Below, one piece after another: positions 9,149 through 49,229 of a stretch of 64,000 nt of DNA; position 1 is the stretch's first letter, and every line of letters starts with the position of its first letter. This stretch comes from Podarcis pityusensis. Lineage: Eukaryota. Position numbers and translations under genes: made by a program. The notes under the pieces are model-generated. The model was not told the origin of the DNA. It saw only the letters and a list, made by a program, of their open reading frames with translations, and did not search any database. Where the stretch lies: assembly GCA_964106645.2 (NCBI GenBank), contig OZ067046.1, one strand, 5' to 3'.

Positions 9149-9184
<36 letters not shown>
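9149..9184. repeat. (ATT)12 microsatellite
   Basis: Read directly. Confidence 0.95.
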
Positions 9185-24970: not shown

Positions 24971-25799
24971 ATGCATTAAAACGCAGCAAGGTCCACTCCC
25001 CCAACTCCCATTGCCTTTAAAATAAAATCTGCACATGATTGCACACATCTGTACAGTTGTATGTGTTTCCAAGTCAAGTGCTGCCTGCCCACACCAGTGG
25101 GCGGAGAGGGGGAGTGGTTGTCCTCATACGTTTGCAACTTGGATTGAAATTGGTTTGGAGGAAACAACATAAAAACGCAGTATCTCTCAAGGAACTTCAA
25201 GACAGATGTGGATTGTGGCTAACTTGTGTACACTGCTTCACAAACCCAGCAGTGGGAGCACACTGGATGTAGAGTAAATAGCCTTGTGTGCACTGTATAA
25301 GGCGGCTTCCTATGTTACTACACTTGGCAGTCTTATAAAAGCTCATCCTTTCTGAGCTTCACCTCAGCCCAATTTCTCCTACAGGAAATATTACCGATAC
25401 ACCTTTAAAAGGTGGCAGCGAGGATTTCTGTATGAAGTACTGGACTTAGGAAGTTTAAATGCTACGTATTCACTTGCTAGAAAGTTTTTCTTTATCAGCA
25501 CTGCTTCGTGCCATAAACCAGAGTCTGTAGGGCAGTTATTCTCCAGCTAGCTTGTATGGATGCAAGCTTCTGTCTAAAGAACAGTGGGATGTGGTTAACT
25601 TTGATTATCCTGCTTATATTTTAAGATAAAAAGCCATGCAGACCTGAGGCATTTTTTTATGGTACTGTGTACAGTTACACCTTAAAATTATGGATACAGC
25701 ACATGTGTATGATACAGATAGTGCTCTTTCAAGGAACCACAACCACTTCTACCACCTTGGGACAAATTCAGGTTTGCTATTGCTGCTTCATCTTCATCG

Positions 25800-26050
25800 T
25801 CGTTTTATTATTTATACCCCGCCCATCTGGTTGGGTTGCCCCAGCCACTCTGGGCAGCTTCCAATACATATAAAAACACAATAAGATGTCAACATTAAAA
25901 ACTTCCTGATACAGGACTGCCTTCAGATGTCTTCTAAAAGTTGTGTAGTTATTTATCTCCTTGACATCTAATAGGAGGGCGTTACACAGGGAGGGTGCCA
26001 CTGCCGAGAAGGCCCCCTGCCTGGTTTCCTGTAACTTCACTTCTCACAAT
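25800..26050 (-). mobile_element. L2-like LINE 3' fragment
   Basis: Minus-strand peptide AFSAVAPSLCNALLLDVKE...FRRHLKAVL, typical of the L2 ORF2 C-terminus; similar to the 54850 copy. Confidence 0.8.
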
Positions 26051-27555: not shown

Positions 27556-27670
27556 GGTGAAGACCATGCCCGAAGATCATCACTACTTGATAGTGATGAG
27601 ACAATGTCATACTACTATGATGATGTGAAGACAGTTTATGATGTCTTCCAAAGAGGAATGCACGTGTCAA
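27556..27670 (+). CDS. ACSL1: ACSL1 exon 3 (GEDHARRSSLL...RGMHVS)
   Basis: ctacag| ... |gtgagt; 115 nt; phase consistent. Confidence 0.96.
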
Positions 27671-27779
27671 GTGAGTATTCATGCTTTGGGAAAGCAAACT
27701 GGAACAGTGCTCTAGTCACCTGAAAGAAACAGTAGCTGACTGCTTTCATAGTGCAGTAAAATATTGTCTGCTGGAATAA

Positions 27780-28021
27780 GGTACCCCTGCCCGTACGGGC
27801 CAGTCGTGTCCGACTCTAGGGTTGCGCGCTCATCTCGCTCAAGAGGCCAGGAGCCAGCGCTGTCCGGAGACACTTCCGGGTCACGTGGCCAGCGTGACGA
27901 AGCGGCATCTGGCGAGCCGGCACCAGTGCCGCACACGGAAACGCCGTTTACCTATAGATAAATAGGCAGTACCTATTTATCTACTTGCACTTAGGGGTGC
28001 TTTCGAACTGCTAGGTGGGCA
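27780..28021 (-). mobile_element. 5'-truncated Sauria SINE in ACSL1 intron 3
   Basis: Reverse-complement similarity to the 1488 copy; TSD GGAATAA 27773-27779 / 28022-28028. Confidence 0.85.
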
Positions 28022-28312
28022 GGAATAACAACTAGTAATCAGAAAATCAGGAATAGCAAATAGTAATCAGCTAAACTTTCAGAACCTGATGATTGAAGTT
28101 TAAAGTGAGAACTGTGTATCATGATGGTTGCAATATTGACATTTTGAGTAATGAAGACTTGCACATGAATTTTTAACTTTAGAATCGTGGTTTTTTGGGG
28201 GGGCTAGAGTGAACCATCTGATGGTGGAATGAACTAGAATCTCCCTTGTGTTTCTTTCTTTTCCTTTTTAGTTGCTAAAATTCTTAAACCTTTTAAACTT
28301 TTATCACTGTAG

Positions 28313-28377
28313 ACAATGGCCCTTGTTTGGGTGTAAGGAAACCAAATCAACCATATGAATGGATCTCTTACAAGGAG
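28313..28377 (+). CDS. ACSL1: ACSL1 exon 4 (NGPCLGVRKPNQPYEWISYKE)
   Basis: tgtag| ... |gtaagt; 65 nt. Confidence 0.96.
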
Positions 28378-29379
28378 GTAAGTGGACACAACTTTATGTA
28401 TGTTGATGAGATTGCTGTTTGATTCTTTTGATGCTTACAGCAATCAAGTTATTTCCTTTCAGAAATGTTGGGATGAGGGAAGTTCAACAGCCACAATTAT
28501 TGGGTGCATACTTAAGTGGCCTATGTTCTTTATGTTTATATTTAATACAAAATTGTTGTTAAATTTCACTAGTATCCAGGCTTTATGTGTTGCACACTTG
28601 CCTAATCTCTAGTTCAACAGACACTTTAAAGTATCTTTCAAAACTTGAATTCTAATCAGTTTTTCCTTTTGTGAACTTCCTTATATTTCCTGTCCCTTCC
28701 TTTCTCTTTCAATCCCTGAAAAGCCTGTCTGGAGGGGTCAGAGGCTCCAGACCCTGTGCACAATGGGGAAATTACCCAGAATGGGTGGGAACTTTGGGCG
28801 ATAGCAGACATCTGATTGGTTTGGGGTTTTTTGAGGGGGAGGACTTTATTCAATTAACTTTCTCAAGTCAGCTTATCTTAGAATCTAAGCCACCGTGTTT
28901 CATTGTAACTTGGCTAATATATATCACAAGAGATATATTACGTGTTGGAAATATTGATCCTGTGTGTGATCCCTATAATATTTCATATTCTAAGCTTTTG
29001 TATTCTTAGCTAAACAGACTTAACAGCATTCCCACCTACATATTCAAACTGAGTATGTCTCAGCTCATTTAAAATCTGATTCTTCTATGTGGTTTGTGAA
29101 TTTAATGGCCAGGGCAGTTGTGGAATTATTCTTAGCTCTGCCTAGGCATAATTTTTTAGAGCAGATACCTGGCTTTTAAAAAACAGGCTTCCATCCTACT
29201 AATTAATGGTATATAGCTTCCCTTAAGCATTGGCCAGTACCTGTGCGAAATGTGTAAAGTGGCTAAGGTTACTGAAGAGGCTGAGCGGGATAAAATGGAA
29301 AATTGAACAGTAAACTCCTACATGCTTTCACAGAATTGGTAAGTGGTGCACCTTTACACAGACATATGTTTTCCCCCAG

Positions 29380-29481
29380 GTTGCAGAAAGAGCAGAATGT
29401 GTTGGCTCAGCACTTCTGAACAGAGGCTTCAAACCATCTCCTGATCAGTTCATAGGAATCTTTTCACAGAACAGACCTGAG
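29380..29481 (+). CDS. ACSL1: ACSL1 exon 5 (VAERAECVGSALL...FSQNRPE)
   Basis: ttcccccag| ... |gtaatc; 102 nt. Confidence 0.96.
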
Positions 29482-30727
29482 GTAATCAAAGGCCATCATT
29501 AGGCTGATAACTCTTGTGGAATAAGGTAGTCCAGTTGTATAGCTTTGCGCCCCTGGGAAGATGAGCTTCCATGATCCTAATTTCACCCAACCCTGTACAC
29601 AGTGCAGCACCAGTACAGAGTGAATGGTTGGGAGGTTGCCATCGTCCGTAAAAATCACATCTTGCTCACTAGGAAACCAATTCACCTGGAAGCCAGAATC
29701 AAGGGTTTGGTCTCCCTTTGCAAGGAAGCTGCCCACCCCTCAGCTGATCAAGCCCCCATACTGCTCTTCCTTGCAGGAACCAGAGCAGTATGGAGCTGGG
29801 TGATATATCTCGGCTGCGTCTTCCTCCCCTAAGGTGTCTCCCCTAAGGTGGAGAGGAAGAAGCAGACAAGATACTTTTCAGACACTGTGACATATCAGCA
29901 TATACTGATATTTAGCTGCTGATATATCATGATGTTGAAAACCAGATATTGCCGAGCCCTAAATAGCAATATCAACTCTTACACACCTGGATATGCACTT
30001 ACAAATTCTGTTGTTAAGAATGCATTGATGTTTCTTATGTGTGTAAAAGAAAACAAAAAACTTGTACAAAGAGTGTTGTAATGCAGTGCACCTATACACT
30101 TGCACAATGTGTAAAAAGAATTCATACCAAGCCCTACTATGCAACCAAGCTCATACCAGGGTGGAACTAATTGCTCATTAGCTAACTTTCAGCAATCCTT
30201 TGTACGTACATAGCTTTATAACTGAGATGTTTTTCAGAGGGAGACTGTTCCTTCATATGCACCCTTTATGGAAATTTGAATTGTGAACTGCAGACAATGC
30301 AAGCCTCTAAGACTTGATACTAACGGACCACAAAACTGAGTCATAACAACTGTGGTAGCTAAGATACCGAACGTTTCTTCCAGTTCAATACTAGTTCAGG
30401 GAGTTTGTTTCCTGCATTGTTTTTGTTGGCATTTGTTTTTTCCAACATTATCTCTTAATCTAATGTGCGACTCTTTAGGAAAGGTGTCCCATTGAACTGA
30501 TTGATCCAGTAATACAATACAGCACATTATAGAGAAATAGGTGTGGAAAATATCTGGGACTTTGGTTAAGAAAGCATTAACATATGGCTTAGCTTTAACC
30601 ATCGGTTAGCTTGCTTATTATAGTATTACTTGCTTAAATCAGCTTTATCCTTTAGGTTCATGGCAACATATAATGATGGAAGTGCCCTCCTATGGCACTT
30701 CCTGATGCACATTGCATTAAAATACTC

Positions 30728-32218
30728 TTTTTTTTTTTTTTTTTTTAAAGCAATTTATTAAATTTTACAGTAAAAATAAACATAATAAACAATGTAACAT
30801 TGATCTTAACATATTTTCACATTTTCTTTGGACTTCCTCACATCTCCCGCTCCCACTTTCATCGTTGTAACGTTTTGTCAGCAATTTATCATCTTGTTTA
30901 AATTCTTATATCCCTTCTATATTTCATAATCTTATAATTCTCAGAAGGAGCTAAATTTCACAATCTTACTTATTTTCTTAAAAACTTCTAAATTTAGTGG
31001 TGCTCAGTTATTTTGATCTAGCGTCTTGTTTAGCATTCACTCAAATTACAATACTTTTGTAAATAGTTCTTAAATTTCTTCCAGTCCTCCTCAATCCTCT
31101 CTTCTCCCAGGTCACGGATTCTGCCGGTCATTTCAGCCAGTTCCATGTAGTCTATCAGTTGTATCTGCCATTCTTCCAGTGTGGGTAGATCTTGAGTTTT
31201 CCAATGTTTTGCGAGAAGTATCCTTGCTGCTGTTGTTGCATACATAAAGAATGTCTGGTCCTTCTTTGCCACCCCTTGGCCGACAATACCCAAAAGGAAA
31301 GCCTCTGGTTTCTTAGTGAAGGTATATTTAAATACCTTTTTCAGTTCATTATAAATCATTTCCCAGAACGCCTTCACTTTAGGGCAAGTCCACCAGAGGT
31401 GGAAGAACGTTCCCTCACACTCTTTGCATTTCCAACACTTATTATCAGACAGGTGGTAAATTTTGGCAAGTTTGACTGGGGTCATATACCATCTATAAAT
31501 CATTTTCATTACATTTTCTTTCAGAGCGTTACATGCAGTAAATTTCAATCCATTGCACCACAACCTCTCCCAGTCCTCAAACATGATATTATGCCCAATG
31601 TCCTGTGCCCACCTTATCATAGCCGATTTAACCGTTTCGTCTTGTGTATTCCATTTCAGCAGCAAGTTATACATCCTTGAAAGTACCTTAATCTTTGGTT
31701 CTAACAATTCTGTTTCTAATTTCGATTTCTCCACCTGGAACCCTAGTTTCTTATCATTTTTAAAAACTTCTTTAATCTGAGCGTAATGTAACCAATCTCG
31801 CACTTTGTCTTTCATTTTCTCCAAACTCTGCAATTTCCAATTGTCTCCATCCTTTTCTAGTATTTCCCAATATTTTGGCCATTTAGCCTCCATATTGGGT
31901 CTTTTTCGGGCCTTGGCTTCCAAAAGTGAAAGCCACCTTGGTGTTTTATTTTCCAGCAAGTCTTTATATTTTGTCCAGACATTAAACAATGATTTTCTGA
32001 CAATATGGTTCTTAAAGGCCTTATTTGCTTTAACCTTGTCATACCATAAATATGCATGCCATCCAAAAGCATTGTTAAACCCTTCCAGATCTAGCACATC
32101 AGTGTCCTCAAGAAGTAGCCAGTCTTTTAGCCAGCAGAACGCTGCGGCTTCATAATACAACTTTAAGTCTGGCAGGGCAAAGCCCCCTCTTTGTTTTGCA
32201 TCAGTTAATATCTTAAAC
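30728..32218 (-). mobile_element. 5'-truncated L1-clade LINE (ORF2 C-terminus, 3' UTR, poly(A)), antisense in ACSL1 intron 5
   Basis: Open ~400-aa frame with GGFALPDLKLYYEA and the CCHC knuckle CWKC...HLWWTC; minus-strand AATAAA at 30754-30759; 19-nt poly(A); TSD TTAAAATACTC 30717-30727 / 32219-32229. Confidence 0.93.
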
Positions 32219-32579
32219 TTAAAATACTCTTTGTACAAGTGATTGCTTTTTACATGCATAAGGAATTGTAATGTGTTCTTCTAAATGCTTGTATTGAACA
32301 AATTCATGTGGCAGGGAACTGGGTTTGATAGCAACACCTGTATACAAGATGGAAGTAGATACGACTGTTGTGGAGCAATAGCCCTTCTTTAACCACTCCA
32401 TGCCCTTGCAGCTGCCAAATGTATGATGTGATCTCACCACACTTTTCCAGTACTGTATTACAAAGAAGAGGAGAGGGAAACTCTTTATATCATTTTCAGC
32501 AGCAGACCTATGTTTACTATGTCCAGTTCCTCCCACAGGGGCAATGTGAAGTAACCCTGAGAAACAAGATGCAGAAGTA

Positions 32580-32808
32580 CAGTGGTACCTCGGGATACAA
32601 ACGCTTCGGGTTACATGTTTTCAGGTTGCGGACCACGGGAAACCCAGAAGTACCGGAAAGGGTACTTCTGGGTTTCACCGCTTGCGCATGCACAGAAGCG
32701 CTAAATCACGTCACATGCGTGTGCAGATGCAGCGCTGCAGGTTACGAATGCGGTGGGTTGCGGACATGCCTCCATCACAGAGTATGTCCGCAACCCAAGG
32801 TTCCACTG
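32580..32808. mobile_element. Tc1/mariner (Tigger-like) MITE
   Basis: TA-CAGTGGTACCTCGGG ... CCCAAGGTTCCACTG-TA. Confidence 0.82.
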
Positions 32809-33367
32809 TAATGTTCTTTTTTTCAGTACTCCAGACTTACAAACTATTTCAACACGAATATGTACGTCCAACTCCAATGATATATTAACAGACTGTTCCA
32901 GGACTGTTTGTGTGTGTCAGGGGGTAATAGTTCTTCCTTATCTTGGTGCCTGTTCAGACTCTCAGCTTGTGACTGAACTGGTTATTAGGCACATGCAGAA
33001 TGCAACAAACTGCATCAGCAAAAGCTGGCTTGTAACTTATCATAACAACAAATCCGTGCCAAACACTCGCATGCATGGGCTGGCTAAACAGCACCGATCA
33101 CAAGCTGTAAATAGCTGCGTGAATGGCATCTTAGCTTCCATGACAGTATTCATAAAGGAAACTGGAATTGCAAAAGCATTGACTTTTCTCCTTACTGCTG
33201 CATACTTCAGTTGATGGCAGCAGCTTGCTTTGCAAACAAACAAGGCTGACACTGGCATACTTGAGTCACTGTTTTAATGCTAGTGTGAAAATACCTAAAC
33301 CAGGCCAGCTGGCTGTAGCATCTGTGCTTGGCAAATAAGCACTACATTAACTCTGCTTCTCTTGCAG

Positions 33368-33467
33368 TGGGTTATCATTGAACAAGGATGCTACTCTTAC
33401 TCTATGGTGGCTGTACCCCTCTACGACACCCTTGGAACTGAAGCTATTACTTACATTGTAAATAAAG
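33368..33467 (+). CDS. ACSL1: ACSL1 exon 6 (WVIIEQGC...PLYDTLGTEAITYIVNK)
   Basis: cttgcag| ... |gtatat; 100 nt. Confidence 0.96.
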
Positions 33468-33945
33468 GTATATTCTGCATTCCTCAACAACTGAATACAC
33501 TTGTCTGTAATACAGTCACTATTAAAAAGTCTACCCACCATAACCTAAACATCATTGAATGCAACTGTAGAGTTCTTTGCAGAATTGTTTTTGAAAGCTG
33601 CTACAGCAACAGAATTGCAGTAGGTAAGATGAAGTAGCCTTTAATAGCTGAGTAGACACAAGGACTTGCTGACTATAGGAAGTGAATCCATCGATTCCGA
33701 CAGTCTGTTTTGGGATATAATGGCTTTGGAGAAGGAGCAGCCTGGAGAGCGTTCTTGGAATGGCCTACATACAATGAGATCCCTGCAGCAAAATGAAAGC
33801 GCCAAACTTAAGTGTACAATATGCAATTTACTCCCAACCTTGGTGACATAGTCTTTTGTGCAGAAGTAGACTAGATAGGGTGAGGGTAAGCTGATTCTAA
33901 TTATTCAAATTTTAATAACTTTGCCCCCTTTCTTCCCAATTTTAG

Positions 33946-34124
33946 CTGACTTAGCATTGGTTTTTTGTGATAAGCCTGAAAAGGCGAAGCTTCTGCTGGA
34001 TAACATCGAGAAAGGAGAAATATCTGTCCTCAAGACAATTGTGATTATGGATCCCTTTGAGAGTGATCTTGCCACTCGTGGAAAGAAATGTGGAGTGGAT
34101 GTAATCAGCATGAAAGAATTTGAG
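33946..34124 (+). CDS. ACSL1: ACSL1 exon 7 (DLALVFCDKPEKA...SMKEFE)
   Basis: ttttag| ... |gtgagc; 179 nt. Confidence 0.96.
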
Positions 34125-34649
34125 GTGAGCAAAGTAGTTTATGGGACAGCCCCAAGTTTTGATGATACATCAAAATCAAGGGAAGAAAGAAGCGAAGTTT
34201 AGCAAGTTACAAAATGCTGATCTTTGACCAACAGGGTAAAGGATAAAGGTTGGACTTGTGTTGTGTAAAAGCTTGGATCTCCTGGCCAGTTTACAAATTA
34301 GTATTTCACAACATGGCACTAAACATTTGCTAAGATTAAAGATACACAACCTAGTATAACTGGTTCAAAGGTTGTGTCAATTCTGGGAGGGGGAATCACA
34401 CTTGAAAAATGTTAACGAGAACCTGTAGTCCTGATTTATAAAGTGTCACTGCAACAAAGATCAGAGGTCTTGTGCGCAAATCCATACTCCAAATGTTCTT
34501 TGTGCTTCTGTAATGTAGTTCTCCAGTAAGCTTTCAAGTCTGACTTTTGAGGAGCCTGAACCTTTAATTGGATGGCATGAAAAAAGATCCAGCTTCAGAA
34601 TGTCTAGCGCTGATGCCTATGTGCTCCCAGTTAGGATTAGGCAAGTCAA

Positions 34650-35040
34650 TTGAGACTCTTATCACAAGACAAACCTCACTGGATCAGCCCAAAGGCCCAT
34701 ATAGACCAGCTTTTCTGTTCTCACAATAGCCAGACGGATGCCTGTGGGAATCCTGCAAGCAGAATTTGAGCACAACAGCACTTGCCCCACCTGTGATGCC
34801 CAGGAACTGGTATTCAAAAGTATATGGCTCTGACAGTAGTGGTAGAACGTAGCCATCATGGCTAGCAACCATTGATGGCCTTATCCACCCTGAATTTATG
34901 TAAAGCCATCCAGGTTGGGACATCATGGCCTCCTATGCAGGCAAACTATTAACTATTTGCTGTGTGAAATACTTTCTTTTGTGTGTCCTGAATCTCCCAA
35001 CATTCCGCTTCCTTAATGTACCTGAGTTCTTGTTTTACAA
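34650..35040 (-). mobile_element. Old CR1-like LINE 3' fragment
   Basis: CTGGATCAGCCCAAAGGCCCAT...CTGTTCTCACA; a related copy lies at ~50845-50990. Family assignment is tentative. Confidence 0.5.
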
Positions 35041-35229
35041 GGGCAAGATCCTCCTTTAGGTGACTGGCTTTCTACTGAAGCATCTACAATATTATTTTGT
35101 GTTGAGGCTCAGGAATGTCCATTTCTGCCTGAACTTTGCCCTACCTATTCAGAATCCTATTGCCAATAGACAGTTACACATGTTTTGGTTACCAAAGTGT
35201 TTAAAAAGTGCTTGCACTTGCAGAAGAAT

Positions 35230-35960
35230 TCCTGAATTTGCCAACAACATGTCCAAAGACTGGGTTGAACTCCCTCTGAAGGAACAGATACACAGTCTTG
35301 GGATGCTTCTGAATCCAGCTTTGTCACTAGGGGCCTTGGCCACAGTTATTCCGGACTGGGATACCTTGGCTACCATTAAACTAGGCATTGGTAACTTCAA
35401 GACTGGATTACTGCAGCAAACTCCATGTGGGGCTTCCCTTGTAGTTGATCCAGAAACTTCAGTTAATGCAGAACGTTGCAGCACAGCTGCTGACAAGAAT
35501 GAAATCTTGTCAATATGTTACACCCGTGCTCAAAGATATGTGCAAATTCAAGGTGTTAGTAAATAAAACCCTCAGTAGCCTGGAATGAGATTATTCAAAG
35601 GGTCAACTTGCCCCATATGTGCCCACTTGATCACTTTGATATGTGGAACTTGCATTTTTGCAGAAGCCATATAATGTTCATTTCACATCTATGAGGAAGT
35701 CAACCTTTTACTGTGGCGGTACCCATGCTGTAAAACTTCCTGCCTGGTAACATCAGGCAGGTGTCTACTGTATTGTTTTAAGTGCCTTCTCAAAACTTCT
35801 GTTTCTTTATGCCTTTTCAAATACATAATTGCATTAGGTATGCTTGCTTTCAATTTCTGTTGATCTGTAGTTTTCTATGCATAAAATATTTAGCTGATTT
35901 AGTGTTTGTTATTGTTGTTATTGTAGCTGTTGTTATTAAATTGTCTATAGATTTTGTTAA
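35230..35960 (+). mobile_element. Degenerate L2 LINE 3' portion
   Basis: Remnant peptides SLGMLLNPALS and RLDYC...QKLQLMQNVAA, typical of L2 ORF2. Confidence 0.65.
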
Positions 35961-37032
35961 ATAAATAATTTGGAGTTCAACACTGCTAAAGTAGTATCAC
36001 TGAAGCGTTTTCCTGGGGAAAAGATGACTTTGCTTTTAATCTGCTTGTTTATTCATCACGGGAACCTGTTCTGACTAGGGTGGAATCTACATACATATAA
36101 AAACAGTTCTGAAAATGCTTTTTTTAAAAGCATTTTTAAAAATACACTGAATTCCATAACAATCTCCATCTAGTGTCACATTGTGTATTGCACTTTAAAC
36201 ACACTTAAAACGTTTTATTTGCAGCTGTATAGCTGAGTCCTAGCTCTTGCCTCCAGACTATCACCAGGTTTATTTGTTTCATTACTGGTAGAAATTCACT
36301 CATCATAGCCATACCACATGCATGTCTTTCGTTTCTGCTCCCCAGCCCAATGGCAAATTCAGAAAACTAAAGATGCCAGAGGCAGCACTGTTAAACTTAA
36401 TATTAAACCAGTTTAATAATTTCTGGCTTGTGTCCTGAGGTGAAGTTTAGGGTGTGGATTTCCAAATGCTTGATTACCAGCATGAGCCTTTCTTCATTCA
36501 GGGAAGGAGCTTTCCTTTACTTATTTAGTTTTAAGTGACAAATTTGAAAACCACAACAAGCAGTGTTTCTAAGTTACCTCATGTATATACCAAGGTGGAA
36601 TTTACTACTAGTTGTATGTTGTGCCAGTTCAGATCTGTCCTGAATCAACTGCATGCAATCAAACATAACTTACTGTGCTCCCACTGGAGGTGCTCCAATT
36701 CTAGTTCACCGAGGGAGGGGAAAGGTCAGAACCTGCGGGCATTTGATGAGTACAGAGCATAAGCCTTGCCAGCTTTCCAAAACTTAATTGAGTTTAAAAC
36801 CTGTCCAAGTGTATAACCTATAAATGAGGAAAGCTGTCATTGTTTTAAGTGCTAGGTGAATAGTTGTGCTTTCCCTTCCAAATAGCTGAGCCTTGGTTAG
36901 AAACCGATGAATGAAAAGTAGTTTTCACTGCTGCTCCTGAGAGAGCTTAAAGTAAGAGCTATGGAAATCCCAACCTTCATTAGCTTCCTAACTTGCATCT
37001 CTTTCTCTCTCTCCTTCCTGTCTTCCTTAAAG

Positions 37033-37065
37033 GCACTGGGAAGAGTCCACAAACACAAAGCTGTA
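37033..37065 (+). CDS. ACSL1: ACSL1 exon 8, 33-nt small exon (ALGRVHKHKAV)
   Basis: Long pyrimidine tract + aag| ... |gtaagt; phase 0 at both ends. Confidence 0.92.
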
Positions 37066-37186
37066 GTAAGTATCATGCAGATTCTAATATAAAAATCTAG
37101 TTTACTTTTTTTTAACCTTTCAAACTGTGTGTGTGATCAGTTGTTAAAGACAGACTGCTAGTCTAATCTCTTACTCTTCTTCTTAG

Positions 37187-37238
37187 CTTCCAAAACCAGA
37201 AGATCTAGCCATAATCTGTTTCACCAGTGGAACTACAG
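37187..37238 (+). CDS. ACSL1: ACSL1 exon 9 (LPKPEDLAIICFTSGTT; first half of the P-loop)
   Basis: tcttag| ... |gtacac; 52 nt. Confidence 0.96.
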
Positions 37239-37659
37239 GTACACCTTAGAAGTATTGTAATGGGGAGACAACATTCGTCGGTTGGGGAAGTGAGATTAGA
37301 ATTTTGAGATACCTGGATTGCAGTCTAACATAGAAAACTGATTTAATGCTATAAAAGCAGATTCTTTACTAAACTGCTATGAGCCCTAGTTTTTGATGGG
37401 GCACAGAGACTTCAGTTGTATGTCTAAGCTGCTGAGAAGGACAGAGGTTTTGGAGGTAGGGGAAATTATCCAGCCTTGCCCATATCCTGGATTTCTCTTC
37501 ACATTTGGTAGGACATTTAAGGAAGTAAAATGGATTATGTGTATTCATTGTATAACCTATCATTCTTAAGCTCTTGCATATGTATACAAGCGTTTCAGCA
37601 GCTTAGTTAGAAACTGGATGTATTCACTATTACATATATTAACACCTTTTTTCCTCTAG

Positions 37660-37733
37660 GAGACCCCAAGGGAGCAATGATTACTCACCAAAATATAGTG
37701 AGCAATATGTCGGCATTTGTGAAAGCTACAGAG
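37660..37733 (+). CDS. ACSL1: ACSL1 exon 10 (GDPKGAMITHQNIVSNMSAFVKATE)
   Basis: cctctag| ... |gtaaag; 74 nt. Confidence 0.96.
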
Positions 37734-39184
37734 GTAAAGTGTGATGGTTGAGTTTTTAAAAGCTTAGAGTGTACCTCACTTGGAATAGAAGCAGCTAGAC
37801 CTTCCACAATGTACTATCCTTTGAGCTTCTGAAACATGTTATAACCAAACTGTTGGAGATAGACAACTGCATTGCACAATTAAAACTTTGTTAGCAATCT
37901 TTTTTAAAACAACAACAACACAAAGCTGCCCAATGATTATTTAATACTTGGACACTGTGGCAGTCTCCCCCAGCCTGGCACTTTCCAGATGTTTTCGATT
38001 CCTACTTGCAACATGCATGGCTGGTTGGCAGGGATTATGGGAGTTGTAGTCAAACAACACCTGGAGGGGTAGTAGATGGGAAAGGCTGCTTTGTGAATTA
38101 ATCTTAATTATAGTTGGGTTTAGAATGCACCCTGTCTTGAAGGTTCACTGAAATTAATTGTAAGGGGAACCAGAACATAGGTGTGTCTGCTAAATTTCTT
38201 AATACTTCAGATTGCCTTATAGCACTAAGTGCTGTAGTGCTCAGAACAGTGTTGTAAGAATTACTGCAATAATATAAGGTGGGTCGGTGCTCCCACATGA
38301 ATAGTGCTCTGAGTGGCTTTCCTAAGGCCACTGACATTTGATGGTTGAGATGGTATTTGGGCCAGATGCTATCTGACATGAAGCCTATCTCCATAACGAA
38401 TGTTCCACCAGTTTTCCCCACATATTTTAATTGTAGCTAACGTAACCTAGTGTTAACTCTATAGCCAAGTGTATTATTGCTTCTCTACTTGCCTGATTCG
38501 AAGAGCTCTTGCATAAAGCACAGTATCAAAAGATATCTGGATTTTTAAAAAAATAACAAGTAGGTCAGTCGGTTTAAGAAGGAGGATCCAATCGAGGGAT
38601 GATTGGACGACGCACTCAGCCCTTTATATCTGATGTTCCTATCTAGCTTTTGATATGATAGAACATCTCACTTATCCACTTTTTCTTGTGACCTTGAGGC
38701 AAGAAAAAACTTTTCTAATATGTTTGTTATCAATAACCCAGGATTAGACGCGAGAACCCTGTTAGCTGTGAAAGCCACACTGGAAATGATTGACACAACT
38801 TTCGAACCCCATTTTGCAGCTGATAGGGCAATGTGGTATAAAAAATAGTCTCCAAATTAACTTGATCAGCTAACTTGGGTTTTTGTTTAATTTGTAGCTT
38901 GCATTCTTTCCAGTTGCTTTGGTGGACATGTGTACTGGTTCTGTTTTAACTGACATGGAATAACAGGCGGGAATAAGTTGGTGACTTGGAACTTCTCAAC
39001 ATCAACAACTTTTAAAAAATACTATAATCAAAAGACCAAACTTTGTTTCAACTCTTTTTAAAAATTCAAGGTTAACCATTAAAAAGATGGGATAAATATG
39101 TGTTTGGGTATCTGTTCTTGCACTAAACAAATTTAACTCTTACATTTTCCTCTTTCTTTCTTCTATTGGTGCTTCCACTGACAG

Positions 39185-39262
39185 AAAGCAGTTTTTCCTT
39201 CTACAGAAGATATTTTAATATCCTTCTTGCCTCTGGCCCACATGTTTGAGAGAGTTGTGGAG
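39185..39262 (+). CDS. ACSL1: ACSL1 exon 11A, Phe-gate exon (KAVFPSTEDILISFLPLAHMFERVVE)
   Basis: gacag| ... |gtagga; 78 nt; gate motif D-x4-F-LPLAH-x2-E. Confidence 0.96.
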
Positions 39263-39314
39263 GTAGGAACCTGTATTTTCTATGTAACAATTAAGTAGTG
39301 TCCTCTTTTTGCAG

Positions 39315-39392
39315 AGTGGCTATATAGTGAGTGCCAGAGACACACACATTTCCTGTTTGCCTCTTGCACATGTATTTGAAAGAATTATGCAG
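39315..39392 (+). CDS. ACSL1: ACSL1 alternative exon 11B, second gate exon with Cys at the gate position (SGYIVSARDTHISCLPLAHVFERIMQ)
   Basis: tcctctttttgcag| ... CAG|gtaaga; 78 nt, same phase as 11A, no stop; motif D-x4-C-LPLAH-x2-E; 52 nt downstream of 11A. Confidence 0.9.
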
Positions 39393-40386
39393 GTAAGACT
39401 CTTTCTTTGTGGGGAAGCAATTTTTTTGTCAGCCTGTCAACAAGCAAGAAGAGCATCTAAGCCGGTATGTTGAAACGGAACAGAAAGGGGGGGGGAATAA
39501 AACTTTTTCTTTTTTTTATTACGATACTGCCTAACAACCCCCCTCCTAGAAGAACCGTCAATACAACCTATAGCAAGTGAGATGGGAAAATAAACTGTGT
39601 GGAAATAAAAATATCAACTAAAGCCTTTCTTTTTTGAAATATCTGGAAAGAAAATAAAAGGCTCTCCTGTGACGCAGTTTTTAATCGGGATGCGCCATTA
39701 TGAGACAGGCTATGCTGCAGAGATTGATAGCCACAACCCTCGGGGGGGGGGGGAGTTTGAGAAGCACCACACTGTTCTGTGTATTTTAAGTGAGATTGTC
39801 TCATCCTCTGTCTCTAATGCTTTCTGAATGCCTTCAGTGCATTCCAAAAGTTGAAACATACAGCTCTACTGTAGACCAGTGAAAAAACGTTGGTGTGCCT
39901 GCTGATCTCTTTAGCCATATGTCTCCAGGCTAATTCGTCAAGCAAGATGTGTAATTCCTACAGCATTTACCCAGCAAGAAATTCAGCGAACTTGCTGACT
40001 GAGTTAAGGATGAGATTTACCAATCTTGGTGTTAGATTGTGAGGCAGGAAACACAGTATGAACCAGACTAGTCAAAAAATTGCATGCTCATTGGTATTGG
40101 GGTGCAGAACATATTGAGGACCGTAACTTTTGTTTTAGTTGGGTGTGTGAGGCAAAAATGATAGAAATAAGTTTCTTAGACAGCACTGTTTTTCTTGGTA
40201 AAGATACTTGGTCAGAGTCTAGCTATGGCTAAGCAGTTAAACCTGTGATATGCCAGAAGAGTGCAAAGAATGCTTTAAACTACACTTAGAAAATATGCAG
40301 AATGTCCCTAATTTTTAACTTGGGCAAATCTACTTGTCCAGCCAGGTGGGTTTGGTTTTAATAATCTATATGGTCTCATTCAACAG

Positions 40387-40521
40387 TGCGTGATTCTCTG
40401 TCATGGAGCTCGGATAGGATTTTTCCAGGGAGACATCAGGCTACTTATGGATGACTTAAAAACTTTGCAGCCTACAGTGTTTCCAGTTGTGCCAAGACTG
40501 CTGAACAGAATGTTTGATAAA
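40387..40521 (+). CDS. ACSL1: ACSL1 exon 12 (CVILCHGARIGFFQGD...PRLLNRMFDK)
   Basis: caacag| ... |gtaagt; 135 nt. Confidence 0.97.
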
Positions 40522-40750
40522 GTAAGTCCACGAGCAATCGAATCCAGTCCGTGCTTTCCTTCTCACTCCCCTTACAAGTTCAGAAGAGCACACTTTGCAG
40601 CTTAGTGAACCTGCCCGTAGCCATCAGGGCGGACATCGCAAGCAAAGTTGCCTCTAGGATTTGCTCGGTGAACCGGTATCAATAAGCCAGTAAATGACCC
40701 GTGCAATTTTTTGCTGCAAACATAATAAAAAAAATGGTCTCTCTTCTCAG

Positions 40751-40885
40751 ATCTTTGGCCAAGCAAATACTTCATTTAAGCGGTGGATATTGGATTTTGC
40801 TTCCAAGAGGAAAGAAGCAGAACTTAGAAGTGGCATAATTAGAAATAACAGCCTGTGGGATAAAATGATTTTCCGTAAAATACAG
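40751..40885 (+). CDS. ACSL1: ACSL1 exon 13 (IFGQANTSFKRW...IFRKIQ)
   Basis: ttctcag| ... |gtaact; 135 nt. Confidence 0.97.
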
Positions 40886-41455
40886 GTAACTATACCCCTG
40901 CATTTTAAAAAATGAAAATAGTGTGCTCACTGGAGGGGGGCAGAAGCAATTGGGTTACAAGTACACCCTGCATGGCAGAAACATCCACTTTCAAGAGGAT
41001 GGCTTCAAACAATCCCAATAAAGAGCCTTCCTCTTTTCCTGGCATAGAATTGCCAAATGGGGCCCACTTACACATTAATTTATTATGCAGTCATCCTGCC
41101 CTCAGCTCCTTTGGAAGGAAGGGCAGGATATACTTCTAATAAATGAATTAAATAAATGAAAATTGCCTTCTACTGTACATGCTTGGTTTTAGAATGGCCA
41201 CTGATCTTCATTGCTGTGTCGTGGAACAATTCCAAATGGTGAATTAACAAGGCAGCCAGTGGTACAGTGAATACTGTTCTAAGGAATAATCTCTTTATTC
41301 ACTTAACTCACATGTACATAGAAACCATCAATGGGATTTGCACATTTGAGCCACATTGAGATGTATATCCAAGTGCCACTCACCATAGCTTTTTCCTGGA
41401 TGCTACTGTTGGAATGAAAATAATTGTGGACACTTCTCCCCCCCTCTCTTTTCAG

Positions 41456-41551
41456 GCAAATCTGGGAGGAAAAGTCAGGCTAATGATAACAGGAGCAGCT
41501 CCTGTTTCTGCCAATGTACTGACCTTCCTACGAGCAGCTCTTGGTTGTCAG
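41456..41551 (+). CDS. ACSL1: ACSL1 exon 14 (ANLGGKVRLMITGAAPVS...ALGCQ)
   Basis: ttttcag| ... |gtgagt; 96 nt. Confidence 0.97.
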
Positions 41552-42424
41552 GTGAGTTTGGACTGTGACTGAACTGTAAATCTGCTCTACTTGTTATTTC
41601 GTAAGTTTCCTTAAAGCATTTTATTTTATTTTTTGTCAAGAGTATAAACGCCATACTTTCCTCATAGTGTTAAAGTATAACCAAAAAGAGTAGAATCTGA
41701 GTAGGAGAGAAGCTGATGTGCAAGTTGTCTCACTCTAAGGATGTATTTGGGGAGTGGGATCACTTCTAGTAACATGTCATTAGATGCCCCGCTAACAAAA
41801 ACTAGCTCTCTTTTTGATAGCACGGTATTTCCATGAAGTGGATAGTAGTCCATGAAAACTTACGCCATAATAAATTGGTTTGTCGTAAGGTGACACAAGG
41901 CCACTTGTTGATTTTGCTGCAACAGACTTACATGCCTGTCCTTCTGAAAGCATTATGCCCATGAGTGGAAATCTCCCATTCCCAATGCACACTTAAAAGA
42001 GAGAGATGTGCTTCCACAATTCAGTGTGTTTGGCCTTTAGGTATAATGTTAGGCCAGGGGCTGGATGCTAATGTTTATTATTAAAACTGCAAGAATGTAT
42101 TTCAGAAAACGCTCCAAATTGAAAGCAGATGGGATTTTGTTCAAATGTTCTAACAAAAGCTATGAGACTTGTGATTACTCACTAAAGACAGTTCTGTAGG
42201 AATGATTGTATATGTTGGAATTCTTACTGAAAATATTTGTAGTGCAGGAGGGTAGAGAGACCATGGATGGCTTAGCAAAAATGAATCCTACATTCATACA
42301 GGGTTTTTGTAAAAGCTTAGCCTGCATATTGCCTACAGTTCTGTTTTTTTGTGTTAAAGGAACAACAGAATAGGAGAGGGGCTATAAAAGCTCCAATGGC
42401 TAATTTCTATACTCTGTTTAACAG

Positions 42425-42497
42425 TTTTATGAAGGCTATGGACAGACAGAATGCACAGCTGGATGCTCCCTAACAGTACCTGGTGACTGGACCGCTG
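42425..42497 (+). CDS. ACSL1: ACSL1 exon 15 (FYEGYGQTECTAGCSLTVPGDWTA)
   Basis: aacag| ... |gtaggg; 73 nt; adenylation motif YGQTE. Confidence 0.97.
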
Positions 42498-42819
42498 GTA
42501 GGGCTTCTGTGTTCTTTCTTGAAACGTTGTTAAAAAGATGGCATGGTAACTCAAGCATGAAGTGAGCCTTCCAAAGAAGTTTATGGATTGTTAGTGCAAG
42601 GAAAGGAAAATTGTATTGCTTCCAGTAGTGGTCCACATACATGGTGTTCTGGAAATAAAGGGAGTCTTGCTGTTCTGCTCTGTGCAATCCCACAGAGGGT
42701 GGAGCTTTTCAATTTGCATTTCATTTCCATATTAGACTGGAATTGATAGTATATTCCATATATCTGGTGGAGATTGGCTGTGGAAGTTCATGATAGCAGA
42801 ACCAGCTATCTTCATATTA

Positions 42820-43450
42820 CACCGTTCCTTGCTTGACTACATTGGCTGCCAATTAGTTTCCAGGCCCAGTTCAAAGTATTGTTTTTGACCTATAAAGCCT
42901 TAAATGGCTCAGGACCACAATACCTCAAGGACCACATCTCTCCATATGAACCTAACCCAGGCTTCCTCACCCTGGCCCTCCAGATGTTTTTGGCCTACAA
43001 CTCCCATGATCCCTAGCTAGCAGGACCAGTGGTCAGAGATGATGGGAATTGTAGTCTCAAAACATCTGGAGGGCCAAGGCTGAGGAAGCCTACCCAGACC
43101 CTGAGATCATCCTCTGAGGTCCTTCTTCGTATGCCGCCTCCTTGAGAGGTCCTGAGGGTAGCAATGCGAGAAAAGGCCTTTTCTGCAGTGACTCCCTGTT
43201 AGTGGAGTGCTCTCCCCGAGGAGGTTCGGCTGGTGCCTTCATGATACACTTTTAGGCCCCAGACCTTTGGCTGATTAACATCCTATTCCTTTTAAAATGT
43301 GTTTGTGGGAAGGGGAGGGGTTTTATTTATTTGTTGTTTTTGTCCTTGTTTTCCAATGTATTTTGTGTTTTTCAAATCTTATATATTTATGTTTTTAACC
43401 ACTCTGAGATCTACGGATGAAGTGCAGTATACTAATTTAATAAACAAAAT
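42820..43450 (+). mobile_element. L2 LINE 3' fragment interrupted by a hairpin MITE (42958-43092)
   Basis: LHWLPISFQAQFKVLFLTYKALNGSGPQYLKD; insert with TIRs AGGCTTCCTCA / TGAGGAAGCCT. Confidence 0.8.
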
Positions 43451-44016
43451 AAAAATAAAAATTACGCACTAAGTGCCAGCTTGCCTGGCTGCACTTGAAC
43501 TCAAGTCGGGTTCCCACTGGTTATTTTGATAAGACCAGACGAACACAGTAGCTAATCACAGATCTAGCTACTTTAATGAAAGTAAGCCTTGGATGCAAAT
43601 GCATACATGGAAAGCCCTGTGTAACGCAAATAAGGCATTGTGGTAACAAAGCACTGGGCATTACATACAGATACAGCAATGCCATCACTGAAGCAATACC
43701 ATACACTGCAGTTTCCAGTGTATCATTTAAGTCACATGGATCTCTCTCTATAGTCAATGACCATGAGCAAATTTGGTATGTATGAGTTGACTCTAGAAGA
43801 GTTTGTTTTGATCAATGTGATGGCTGGGAGCCTTAATACAACTTTAAAAAGTTGAGGTCAAAGTACCCTTTGAAACATTCAAAACTCAGGCTTGGGACCA
43901 TGAGAAAACAATAAAGACTGCAGTCTGAATGACACCACTTCTGCTTATGTAGAGCTACAGTTATAAAGTGAGTACTATTGCCACATGCTTAAAGACATTA
44001 TTTATCCAACAAATAG

Positions 44017-44105
44017 GTCACGTTGGTGCCCCAATGCCTTGCAACATTTTAAAGCTTGTTGACGTTGAAGAAATGAATTATTTTGCTGCCAAAGGAGAGG
44101 GTGAG
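44017..44105 (+). CDS. ACSL1: ACSL1 exon 16 (GHVGAPMPCN...AKGEGE)
   Basis: aatag| ... |gtaagt; 89 nt. Confidence 0.96.
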
Positions 44106-44453
44106 GTAAGTAGCACTCTAAATCCAAGGAATGGACCTATGCCAGGAGTCCTCCATCTCAAATTGTACCCATTGTTTAAAAATAAATACTATCTATATCC
44201 AAAGAAACCATAAAAAACCTCATTCAGTTTAATGACCTCGGATTGTGATCTCGATCAACACAGTTTGTCATACAGAGACAAATGCTCTGGTAATGTCACT
44301 AAAGCATGAGATTAGAGAGAATCGCTCTTGAGTGAGATGCACTGGCTACAGTAAATGAGCTTTATTCCCACTCCATCCTAACACTGAAACACTTAATAGG
44401 AGAAACCTGTCCTGCAGATTTTTTTACAGAGCATGTGTTCCATTCTATTTCAG

Positions 44454-44570
44454 GTTTGCGTAAAAGGGCCAAATGTGTTCCTAGGCTATCTGAAGGAACC
44501 TGAAAAGACTGCAGAAGTTCTTGACAAAGATGGCTGGGTACACACCGGAGATATCGGGAAATGGTTACCA
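44454..44570 (+). CDS. ACSL1: ACSL1 exon 17 ([16 protein letters not shown]...[13 protein letters not shown])
   Basis: tttcag| ... |gtaagt; 117 nt; start of the FACS signature. Confidence 0.97.
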
Positions 44571-44914
44571 GTAAGTAAACCAGTGAATCGATCATTTTGA
44601 GACATAAGAACAAATATCAAGATGGCTTGCCATTGCTTTAATTCCACAGATAGAGATGTCCAGACTTTCCATTGCCCTACATATCTTTCCTCTTTGCATT
44701 CTCTTTTTGAACTTCACAAACATGTTTTATCCTCCTTTAAGAGTGTTTCAGGTTAGAATGGGAAAGAAAGGTACCAGAGGGCTGCTTCAGTCCTTTAATC
44801 AGAAACCAATTAAAATGCAAAAATTAATGCAAGTTAGTAAGAATGATGGATTGCTAATCCTACTCAGAGTAGACCCATTGAAGTTAATGGACACAACTAA
44901 TGTAGTCCATTGAT

Positions 44915-45298
44915 GCTTTTGAATTGATGCTTTTCAATTATGGTGCTGGAGGAGACTCTTGAGAGTCCCATGGACTGCAAGAAAATCAAACCTCTCCATT
45001 CTTAAGGAAATCAGCCCTGAGTGCTCACTGGAAAGACAGATCCTGAAGGTGAGACTCCAATACTTTGGCCACCTCGTGAGAAGAGAAGACTCCCTGGAAA
45101 AGACCCTGATGTTGGGAAAGATGGAGGGCACAAGGAGACGGGGACGACAGAGGACGAGATGGTTGGACAGTGTTCTTGAAGCTACCAGCATGAGTTTGAC
45201 CAAACTGCGGGAGGCAGTGGAAGACAGGAGTGCCTGGCGTGCTCTGGTCCATGGGGTCACAAAGAGTCAGACACGACTAAACGACTAAACAACAACAC
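44915..45298 (+). mobile_element. Bov-B (RTE LINE) 3' fragment in ACSL1 intron 17
   Basis: WCWRRLLRVPWTARKSNLSILKEISPECSLE...; (AAC) tail; 16-bp TSD AATGTAG(T/G)CCATTGAT 44899-44914 / 45299-45314. Confidence 0.93.
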
Positions 45299-46559
45299 AA
45301 TGTAGGCCATTGATTTTTATGGGTCTGCTCCAAGTAGGACTTAGTGGAAAACAACCCAATGTTCTCTTAAGCTTCACTCACAAAAAAAAGTCTGTGTGAT
45401 TTGATGCAGCATCATACTTCTAAGCCTTTAGAAGTAACTTAAGCATGTCCGTGTCTGCATGTGTAGATCAAATTGCTGTTGTACAAGTGTCATCAAGATG
45501 GCAAGCCAAAGCACTGAATAATATGAAGTTAATTACAAAAAACAACAACCCAAGTTAATGACAGAAACAGCATTCAGACTGGAGTAGTGACTACTTGGTT
45601 TAATCCTACAAGGGATGGAAAAGAGGGAAATAGTAAAATAAAGGGAACAGCAACAGATGCCAGAAATGTGAAGCTTCTAATTAGACAAGAGGAATCTGAG
45701 AATAAACAACACTGGTGACAGCAATGCACATTCTAGAGACTATGTCCCTTTTTTAATACTGAACTAGTTTCATTCTGACTTGAACGCAGACCGTTTCTTC
45801 CAGCTACTATAATTAACTTAAGGGTCAGTCAACACCACCATCAGGATTGTGATGTAGAAGCTGGCCTTTCAGTGGAGTTAAGACAATGCAAATTTCATAT
45901 TACCACAATTACTACATTTCTTTATGTTGGCATGCCATCTGCAGCTGTTAGACAACTAGTAGAAAGGCCCAGCTGTGGATCGATATATCAACAACATGAG
46001 GAATGGATGAATGTGTCCATGGATTTAGCAGTGCAACCCTCTGATTACCTGCGACCTGTGGGGGCAGGAAGAGGTGGATCAGTCAAAGCAACTGCACCTC
46101 CAGGAGGTCCCAACTGCTACAGTGGATAAACTGCAGCAAATTGTTGTAATAGAGTGTGCTGCCACCAGAACACAGCTGCACAGTATACCTGAAAGGGTTC
46201 AAACTGCAAAGCTAAGTTGCATAGTATCTCTCCTGGGATACCAACCTTAATACATAGAATGCCAGGCATTTCAGACTCTTCCCCAAGACAGATGATTAAG
46301 CAGCCCAGAACATTTAGTACCCAGCCAACAAATGGAGGAGGGCGACAATATACCACTGCAGTAGCTGAGGCCTCTTTACCAGGAGAACCCGGGAATGCGT
46401 TCTAAATAGTCTGAGGCATTCATCCCATCACCGTTGACAAAGTTGGGACAGTGTATTATGCAATGAATGTAAATGAATGAATCTTTGATTGATTTATTTG
46501 ACACTTGTAACATGCTCATAACTGATACATTAGAACTGTTTGTTCTAATGTAGGCATAA

Positions 46560-46562
<3 letters not shown>

Positions 46563-46604
<42 letters not shown>
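46563..46604. repeat. (AG)n microsatellite
   Basis: Read directly. Confidence 0.95.
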
Positions 46605-46605
<1 letters not shown>

Positions 46606-46780
46606 TCTAGTTGTTCCAGATGATTCAAAGATAATGAGCAAGGTCAAATGCTACTGTGAACTATTCCTTCTATTGAGTCTTCTGCTAGCACTTGTGTTAT
46701 TGTTCATGGAGCAATGTGGTCCTGAATTCATTACGTGAACAGTTTTTAGGAGTAAGCTAACTATTATTATTGTGTTACAG

Positions 46781-46924
46781 AATGGTACACTGAAGATAAT
46801 TGACAGGAAAAAACATATATTCAAACTTGCACAAGGAGAATATATTGCACCAGAAAAAATAGAGAATGTTTATATGAGGAGTGAGCCTGTTGCCCAGATA
46901 TTTGTCTATGGTGAAAGTTTGCAG
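46781..46924 (+). CDS. ACSL1: ACSL1 exon 18 ([31 protein letters not shown]...GESLQ)
   Basis: ttacag| ... |gtatgt; 144 nt. Confidence 0.97.
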
Positions 46925-47618
46925 GTATGTTTACCGTAAATGTCTATTAGAAATAGCCTTCTAAATGGAGCATATAAGCATAATTTTTTTAGTTGTTAGT
47001 GGATTTTATTTACAATTAGATAAAATGCTTACTTCTGGACAGGTTAGACTAGCAAAGAGCTGTTTGTAAAATATAAAAAGTGATATTGCTTATTTGGGAA
47101 AAGCCTATTTTTAAAAAGATATTTATTTCTGTGGTAGTACTAATGTGTACATTTAGGCTACCTGATACAAGCCAGGCTTGATGAATGTCTAATCTATGCC
47201 GGGAAACATTCTTCCATAAATGCTGAGTCTTAAATGTGAAGTCCTTAGAATTTTAGGGCAGATTTATTTAAATATTTACATCCCATTTTCAAACCTGCAA
47301 TGAGACCTTTAAGAAGGGCAACCTAATTTGAGACCATCATAATGAGCTAAAAATGATGACCCAAACCTAATAACTCAGCACCAAGATTTAAACCTGCTGG
47401 AATAAAAATATTATGTTTTGTCATTGAAAGGCCATTCAAATCTCTTCATAGTGTCTTCTCCTACCTGCAGTGATGCAACAAACCCCTCAATAGCATTGAC
47501 AATAGCATAGCTTGCTACCTGACTGTACTTTGCGGGGTGGGGTGGGGGGTTCTCAGAGAAACTTCTAAAATGAATTGTCAGTGGGCAGCTTCTAACATGC
47601 TCCCTTACTTCTACTTAG

Positions 47619-47720
47619 GCTTTCCTAATAGGAATTGTAGTACCAGATCCAGATGTTTTGTGTAGCTGGGCCAAGAAAAAAGGACTGGGAGGCACCTATG
47701 AAGAACTATGCAGGAGCAAG
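47619..47720 (+). CDS. ACSL1: ACSL1 exon 19 (AFLIGIVVPDPD...EELCRSK)
   Basis: cttag| ... |gtaagg; 102 nt. Confidence 0.96.
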
Positions 47721-48234
47721 GTAAGGGATTGGATCTGTGATTTAGAGAAGTCTATTCTTCCCACCCTTTTCATAAGCTTCATCCAGGCATCCATTCTGCT
47801 CCTGAGACCACAGCGTGGCAGGTGAACGGGGGTTACACCTGCTAGCCTCATCACAATGTCTACACATCATCGCAGTCTGCTTTTGTGCTCTGGCTAGCAT
47901 TGCCTAGAGGGTTGACTAGGAGTCAATGTGGCCCTCAGTCCACAAAAGCTTAACCACCTCTGGTCTAAAGGATGTGGTGACTCTACTCATATGTTTCCCT
48001 CAAGCAACTGAGAGTCCTGGATTACTGAAACATTCAGTCTCATGGGGGAGCCTATGCATGTACAGCTAGCTCCTCCCTTTTAGATCTTCAATGAACACAT
48101 GCAGGTGAGGGGTGGATAAAGGTAGATAAATATCCACAATAAAACGTGCACTTTTGATAGGTGGTCCACAAATAGTTCAGAAATACTTTCTTTCAGTATT
48201 GCTTTATAACTCTTATTATTCTGAATCCGAATAG

Positions 48235-48306
48235 GACATCAAAAAATATATTCTGGAAGACCTGTTGAAAGTTGGGAAAGAGTTTGGCTTGAAGTCTTTT
48301 GAACAG
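48235..48306 (+). CDS. ACSL1: ACSL1 exon 20 (DIKKYILEDLLKVGKEFGLKSFEQ)
   Basis: aatag| ... |gtgagt; 72 nt. Confidence 0.96.
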
Positions 48307-49088
48307 GTGAGTATCTCTTTGAAGTTTCAACTATAATATTTGTACTTTGATTTCAAATTAAACTGCTTTATTTGCATAGTTTTGCAGCTGGAAACTTTAA
48401 CTGGTTCATTATTGAATCAAAGCTCTAATTTTAGAACAGACCTGAATCTGTGGGGCTGATTTTTGAGAATACATCTTAATTTCATCCCACTTTTACTGCA
48501 ATAGGGAACAGAATAGAGGTGTCTTTCTCTTTCCCTTTTGAGTGTCAGTTATGTAATTTTATCAGGAAATAAATGACAAAATAAACCTAATGCTGCAAGC
48601 AAGTAATGAAAGCAGTTTTAAGATAAAAAGTTTAAAATATAAATTGACAAAATGTAACCAATAGAATATGCCTAGCACTGTGTTTGTGTGTGTATCAATA
48701 ATAAACCAAATGCTGTAATGTACAAATAGTAATAAATTCAAAGAAAATGCTATAATAACTGGATGTGTTTCAACCCAAGTGATCATCTTCAGTGGTACCA
48801 CAAAATATTACAAAAATTTCAGCCTCATCAACCAGCATGCTTGTGAACAATATAAAATAATCTGCTAGGCGTATTTTATTGGTTTATTTTTTATTTTCTA
48901 ACTTTTCCTTTAGTTTTCATTGTTAAATCCTACTTTGCAGAGTTATACTGCTGAGTATTCCTAACATAAATCACTTAGAACAAACTGTTCTGAACATTAT
49001 CTCATATATTCCAAAATGCCAATTTTGCTGTTAATACTAGTTAATGAAAAAAGTATGCAAAATCTGACTTCCTGTCTTATCTTTCCAG

Positions 49089-49229
49089 GTCAAAGGCATT
49101 ACCCTTCACCCTGAAATGTTCTCTGTCGAGAATGGCCTGCTAACGCCAACATTAAAGGCAAAGAGACCAGAGCTACGCAAATACTTCAAGTCCCAGATAG
49201 AAGAACTCTATGCCAATATACAGATGTAA
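49089..49229 (+). CDS. ACSL1: ACSL1 exon 21 coding part (VKGITLHPEMFSVENGLLTPTLKAKRPELR...IQM*)
   Basis: tttccag|; LTPTLK catalytic-lysine motif; TAA 49227-49229. Confidence 0.97.
   Translation, partial: VKGITLHPEMFSVENGLLTPTLKAKRPELRKYFKSQIEELYANIQM

Follow-up and report, generated by a model that had tools for sequence, protein, structure and literature searches.

We put a probability of about 0.6 on the reading that exon 11B of ACSL1, in the window analysed here (a stretch of 64,000 nucleotides of DNA from Podarcis pityusensis), is the second of two mutually exclusive gate exons, and that the cysteine at its gate residue reflects relaxed constraint on a minor isoform and gives a poorly active form of it. 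The change to Cys is most likely a young, tolerated one in that minor isoform and not a new type of enzyme. This reading draws on the anatomy of the exon pair, its conservation, the young and narrowly distributed Cys, a burst of substitution in the exon and its low usage in relatives, all of which were observed.

The host gene is a complete ACSL1 orthologue, in which tblastn with database ACSL1 proteins found all exons in order (Table 1). ACSL1 comparisons were made exon by exon or with database proteins. Exon by exon, identity was 97.5% to Lacerta agilis and 97.8% to Zootoca vivipara (both named long-chain-fatty-acid--CoA ligase 1 by NCBI), which identifies the gene as a lacertid lizard ACSL1; it was 90-92% to other lizards and geckos, ~88% to snakes and 86% to kiwi. 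Matches to the AMP-binding (ANL) domain (Pfam PF00501) were to single exons and collinear; the exons being short, each match fell below the cut-off set for the whole protein. The P-loop T-S-G-T-T-G-x-P-K-G is present and spans a splice junction into exon 10, with Asp at x in the window, and a representative search with exon 12 returned 180 proteins at E<=1e-10. Positions 8001-10000, lying some 10 kb 5' of the ACSL1 start codon, are G+C-rich (0.56 vs ~0.40 elsewhere) and possibly form a CpG-island promoter or a first non-coding exon. Within an ACSL1 intron there is a 121-residue open frame (44923-45285, + strand), the tail of which we take to resemble the C-terminal part of a LINE (RTE/BovB-type) ORF2. 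Two repeat patches were also seen: a highly repeated element at 38020-38123 (summed contig depth ~166,000 vs 28 for single-copy sequence), SINE-like and with loose ends carrying a CCAGCATGGCCAATGG-type core, and a second patch at 39476-39787 with depth up to ~1,200.

Table 1. Positions of the ACSL1 features discussed in the text, counted from the first letter of the window.
Feature	Position	Strand	Remarks
ACSL1 coding span	19949..49229	+	Start ATG 19949; stop after 49226; ~20 coding exons including both gate exons
Exon 10, constitutive, 5' of the gate exons	37660..37733	+	P-loop part ...G-D-P-K-G-A-M...; phase 0 end, then gt
Gate exon 11A, F-gate, main form, 78 nt	39185..39262	+	Spliced contigs; squamate dN/dS ~0.10
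Intron between 11A and 11B, 52 nt	39263..39314	+	In-frame TAG 39296-39298 if retained
Gate exon 11B, Tyr/Phe-type alternative, 78 nt, Cys gate in this species	39315..39392	+	Intact in 8 other squamate loci
Gate codon TGT (Cys)	39354..39356	+	TAT in two close relatives; TTT in Lacerta and Zootoca
Codon GTA (Val) at the near-invariant Met position of ACSL gate motifs	39372..39374	+	GCA (Ala) in Lacerta, Zootoca and two relatives
Exon 12, constitutive, 3' of the gate exons	40387..40521	+	Starts after cag; phase 0; joint 39262>40387

Exon 11B encodes 26 residues with no stop, and its core reads D-T-H-I-S-C-L-P-L-A-H-V-F-E-R. On its acceptor side it has a pyrimidine tract and cag (...ctctttttgcag), and gtaaga follows at its 3' end, so that the original prediction, which had taken this segment for a second, splice-intact 78-nt gate exon, was right in its boundaries and in its reading (ag/gt, no stop). 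The gate motif D-x4-(F/Y)-LPLAH-x2-E is matched by 11A, and 11B reads D-x4-C-LPLAH-x2-E, in which only the aromatic position is lost. By its sequence, exon 11B is therefore a member of the gate exons by descent that departs from them at the defining residue. A PDB sequence search with the 26 residues of the exon gave no match, and a protein search with the 53-residue stop-free read-through around it (39300-39458) gave no candidate. The PDB copy searched held no vertebrate ACSL structure, the best matches being carboxylic acid reductases, and an Rfam search of 36000-42000 on both strands found no RNA family.

Tandem 78-nt gate exons with the F-gate upstream have the same layout in eight squamate loci and in the Tasmanian devil. 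The intron between them is 41-52 nt long in nine squamates, and 67 nt in the Tasmanian devil (L009 42785-42851); that of the window, at 52 nt, is identical to that of Zootoca. Read from the sequence, retention of this intron in the window would lead to a TAG after 11 codons. On established knowledge an intron of 41-52 nt would block splicing, and in alpha-tropomyosin exons 2 and 3 are mutually exclusive, the intron that separates them being too short for spliceosome assembly. The spacing of the ACSL1 pair is similarly short, and from its conservation at 41-52 nt in squamates we infer steric exclusion: splicing could probably not remove so short an intron, and a transcript would then carry only one of 11A and 11B. 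Database models with both gate exons were P0265 (Apteryx rowi), P0001 (Acipenser) and many mammalian ones (724 aa). The kiwi double-gate model reads through an in-frame 51-nt intron, and the mammalian models splice a longer intron.

We compared the ACSL1 loci of Lacerta, Zootoca, Anolis, Pogona, Elgaria, Heteronotia, Thamnophis and Varanus. Exon 11B was found by tblastn in the same place and intact, with ag/gt, in all eight, and is therefore not a chance open reading frame; the stops or frameshifts in related species that would have spoken against the original prediction were not found in these loci. Annotated proteins of the 11B type occur in snakes, geckos, Pogona, Elgaria, Varanus, turtles, a crocodile, palaeognath birds, frogs and mammals, a distribution that marks the 11A/11B pair as ancient. 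Pairwise dN/dS among the nine squamates was 0.10 for 11A and 0.32-0.35 for 11B, and 0.04 and ~0.2, respectively, for the half of the exon that holds the motif. By these values 11B is a genuine exon, though a less constrained one than 11A. The possibility that 11B is a pseudo-exon in squamates as a whole was ruled out by the intact loci, by dN/dS and by the constraint seen in Lacerta and Zootoca (see below). Two of the loci show substitutions of their own in 11B: LPLPH in place of LPLAH in Elgaria (L005 23356-23433), and Gln for His at -3 together with Val at the Met position in Anolis (L003 18262-18339).

The gate residue itself was Phe in 204 and Tyr in 101 of 305 motif instances drawn from 231 ACSL proteins, and no other residue occurred. 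The Cys gate of the window is thus unique in this sample; the original prediction, too, knew of no described Cys gate. In the second ACSL1 exon the residue is Tyr in frogs, a crocodile, Pogona, Anolis, Elgaria, Varanus and a boa, and Phe in turtles, palaeognath birds (kiwi, tinamou), geckos, colubroid snakes (Thamnophis, Naja), most placental models, Lacerta and Zootoca. With Phe in so many vertebrate second exons, the name "Y-gate" fails for ACSL1 in general, and on this point the original prediction is not supported. Across vertebrates the 11B gate switches repeatedly between Tyr and Phe, and yet it stays aromatic.

Four public runs were aligned to 37500-40600 to read the gate codon in the window species and its relatives. 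Run X2, from the same species and another study, has G at 39355 in a contig covering 37500-39490 at depth 28, with no other letter at that position. Run X12 (species D, ~2.3% intron divergence) and run X15 (species E, ~3.4% intron divergence) both have A at 39355, giving TAT and Tyr, and both also depart from the window at 39373, with C (Ala) in place of T (Val). Lacerta and Zootoca have T at 39355, giving Phe, and GCA at the Met position. Within one family, then, a single codon specifies Phe, Tyr or Cys, and only its second base sets the three apart. Because relatives that are 2-3% diverged carry Tyr, the Cys arose after the split from them and is very young. The proposal that TGT lies one transition from TAT is borne out by these two congeners, and the accompanying idea of a Cys that characterises a lineage is not: the distribution of the residue is narrow. 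A single A>G transition (TAT>TGT) would have given the Cys gate recently, a T>G change from TTT being less likely.

The independent run also bears on two other accounts of the Cys. An assembly or sequencing error at 39355 is improbable in the extreme, and an assembly error can be taken as ruled out by the G of X2 in a contig of depth 28; the Cys codon is real. It is unlikely, though less so, that the Cys is a segregating or single-population allele in this species and has not been fixed. Two sources only carry it, the window assembly and run X2, and the closest relatives that were read carry Tyr; moreover a single letter in ~2 kb separates X2 from the window, so that X2 could come from a close relative or from the same animal. 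Against a segregating allele, the sample and study codes of X2 differ from those of the best holder, X1, and a second allele at 39355 was seen in 0 of depth 28 in X2, a figure to be read with the caveat that contigs can drop a minor allele.

The same runs gave an observation on the P-loop. At its variable residue (37662-37664) the window and run X2 share Asp (GAC). Relatives D, E and F carry Asn (AAC), as do the 13 squamate proteins checked besides that of Zootoca, Lacerta's among them; Zootoca has Ser. The Asp is a second young replacement in the window species, in a constitutive exon.

Changes were assigned to branches with Lacerta and Zootoca as references. On the window's branch, exon 11B has five specific changes in 78 nt, four of which are replacements (Met>Val, Pro>Ala, Phe>Cys, Ala>Val). 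Over the remaining 19 ACSL1 exons 17 changes were counted in 2055 nt, with five replacements in 685 codons, and non-coding DNA has 68 changes in 2260 nt. Replacements are therefore 21-fold enriched in 11B (Fisher p 0.0002); put another way, 4 of the 9 ACSL1 replacements lie within the 26 codons that make up 3.7% of the coding length (p 0.0002). Measured against the intron rate, the total in 11B is not significantly raised (5 observed, 2.3 expected, p 0.09). In Lacerta and Zootoca together, 11B shows a single synonymous change, as against the 5-10 expected under neutrality (p 0.0005 to 0.05). These branch counts point to an exon that was constrained in the sister lineages and evolved roughly neutrally on the window's branch, and a near-neutral 11B within an otherwise constrained ACSL1 suggests relaxed constraint on the minor isoform. 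Three of the five changes are probably common to species D and E, none of them falling among the differences listed for these species. The original prediction had held that the intact motif and splice sites argue against decay. The splice sites are indeed intact, and the argument is otherwise weakened by the concentration of replacements in 11B at about the intron rate and by loss of the conserved Met of LPLAH-M-FER.

The counts are small, and a neutral-like rate is indistinguishable in them from weak positive selection. An adaptive change of the gate has therefore to be weighed, in which diversifying or positive selection on the gate of the alternative isoform took it from Phe to Tyr and then to Cys; the Cys isoform would then be a functional enzyme whose fatty-acid (chain-length) preference has shifted, or whose thiol responds to redox state or acylation. 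Such selection would fit three different second bases in this codon within ~6% neutral divergence, and Phe, Tyr and Cys among close relatives would be an unlikely coincidence under plain drift, which counts against relaxed constraint. At the intron rate, replacement sites would be expected to show ~1.8 changes and they show four, an excess over neutral that is not significant (p ~0.1). Selection would also be consistent with the constraint on 11B in sister lineages and with the retention of the splice sites, the frame and the rest of D-x4-X-LPLAH-x2-E; that splice sites and frame are still perfect, and that the intron between the gate exons matches the one in Zootoca letter for letter, are likewise points against relaxed constraint. 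On the other side, an aromatic residue is universal in the 305 motifs, switching between Phe and Tyr is common and neutral-looking across vertebrates, 11B is little used in relatives, and a non-aromatic gate abolished activity in ACSL6 (PMC2868784). A literature search for ACSL1, lizards and positive selection found no relevant paper, and so no link of ACSL1 to selection in lizards. We regard the adaptive account as quite improbable, and relaxed constraint remains the reading that we prefer.

Evidence on usage came from contigs of relatives in the two RNA-like runs, X15 and X19. Joints linking exons 10, 11A and 12 (37733>39185 and 39262>40387) were found at contig depth 253 in X15 and 38 in X19. 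For 11B, X15 yielded one contig of 430 nt and depth 10.8, which carries TAT and the joint 37733>39315 at exact GT..AG sites. This contig runs past the 11B donor to 39448, and its depth resembles that of the intron contigs of the same run (8-30). The joint 39392>40387 was not seen in the RNA-like contigs of the relatives, which show presence and not absence. Of the two junctions put forward for checking in the original prediction, the upstream one was thus recovered in a single contig and the downstream one was not seen. Use of 11B in the relatives is low.

These contigs raise the further possibility that in this genus 11B has become a young pseudo-exon, no longer used productively, whose splice signals have not yet decayed. 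The neutral-like rate on the window's branch would be expected of such an exon, and the sole contig of a relative to contain 11B enters the intron past the donor at an intron-like depth. That contig nevertheless joins exon 10 to 11B at the exact splice sites, the donor cag/gtaaga is strong and unchanged, and little weight can be placed on missing joints in contigs that record presence from runs of unspecified tissue. We consider a pseudo-exon in this genus unlikely, and return to relaxed constraint on a minor isoform.

What a Cys gate would do to the enzyme can be judged from the known gate systems. For mammalian ACSL6 and ACSL1, Soupene and Kuypers (2006; PMC1543647) reported a pair of gate exons, each of 26 residues and mutually exclusive, with the motif D-x4-(F/Y)-LPLAH-x2-E and the F exon upstream; we took the human gate state as given there. 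The mammalian ACSL1 Ex(F)/Ex(Y) pair resembles the lizard pair in gene, position, 26-residue size, upstream F exon and His(-3) in the second exon. The two are also alike in that the second-exon form is minor, being rare among mammalian ACSL1 clones (1/10 in placenta, 1/10 to 1/11 in human cells; PMC1543647), as 11B is low in contig depth in the lizard's relatives. They differ in the Cys of the lizard gate, in intron length (52 nt vs 67 nt in the Tasmanian devil), and in that many mammalian ACSL1 models, unlike the lizard pair, include both gate exons (724 aa).

ACSL6, a paralogous gene, has Y- and F-gate isoforms from mutually exclusive exons with the same motif as ACSL1, and is the only system in which the gate residue has been mutated, to Ala, Phe and Trp and not to Cys. 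Ala at the gate gave very low activity; in the Y-gate context Phe or Trp in place of Tyr was also poor, His(-3) pairing with Tyr (Soupene et al., 2010; PMC2868784). Because these mutants strongly lower activity, we expect the Cys form to be poorly active. The bacterial long-chain fatty acyl-CoA synthetase has a Trp gate that shuts the fatty-acid tunnel until ATP binds (PMC2868784), and shares with ACSL1 the concept of an aromatic gate, in a residue and at a position that differ from the vertebrate F/Y. Against this expectation, transfer of the ACSL6 rule to ACSL1 may be doubtful. The His(-3)/Phe pair is poor in ACSL6 and yet common in natural ACSL1 second exons: it was found in 103 natural motifs among database proteins P0001-P0363, including the second ACSL1 exon of most placental models, turtles, geckos, Lacerta and Zootoca. 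It may be either that the rule fails to transfer to ACSL1 or that such isoforms are naturally weak.

Under the reading that we favour, an old minor alternative exon would have lost constraint in this group of lizards and recently gained a Cys at its gate. The Cys isoform, if it is made, would be poorly active or inactive, with the F-gate isoform doing the work; given that the F-gate form predominates, a weak Cys isoform would be tolerated.

Switching between F and Y gates in ACSL1 and ACSL6 is believed to adjust which fatty acids enter lipid metabolism, and the part played by the gate residue has been deduced from a handful of mutants in a single human paralogue. The lizards provide a natural series at this one residue in a near-identical exon, with Phe in Lacerta and Zootoca, Tyr in two congeners and Cys in this species, and thus a ready-made set for enzyme assays. 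The survey of gate residues also indicates that "Y-gate" is a misfit as a name for ACSL1 in many vertebrates. If the Cys form is dead, exon 11B would be a small example of an alternative exon losing constraint within a gene that is still essential.
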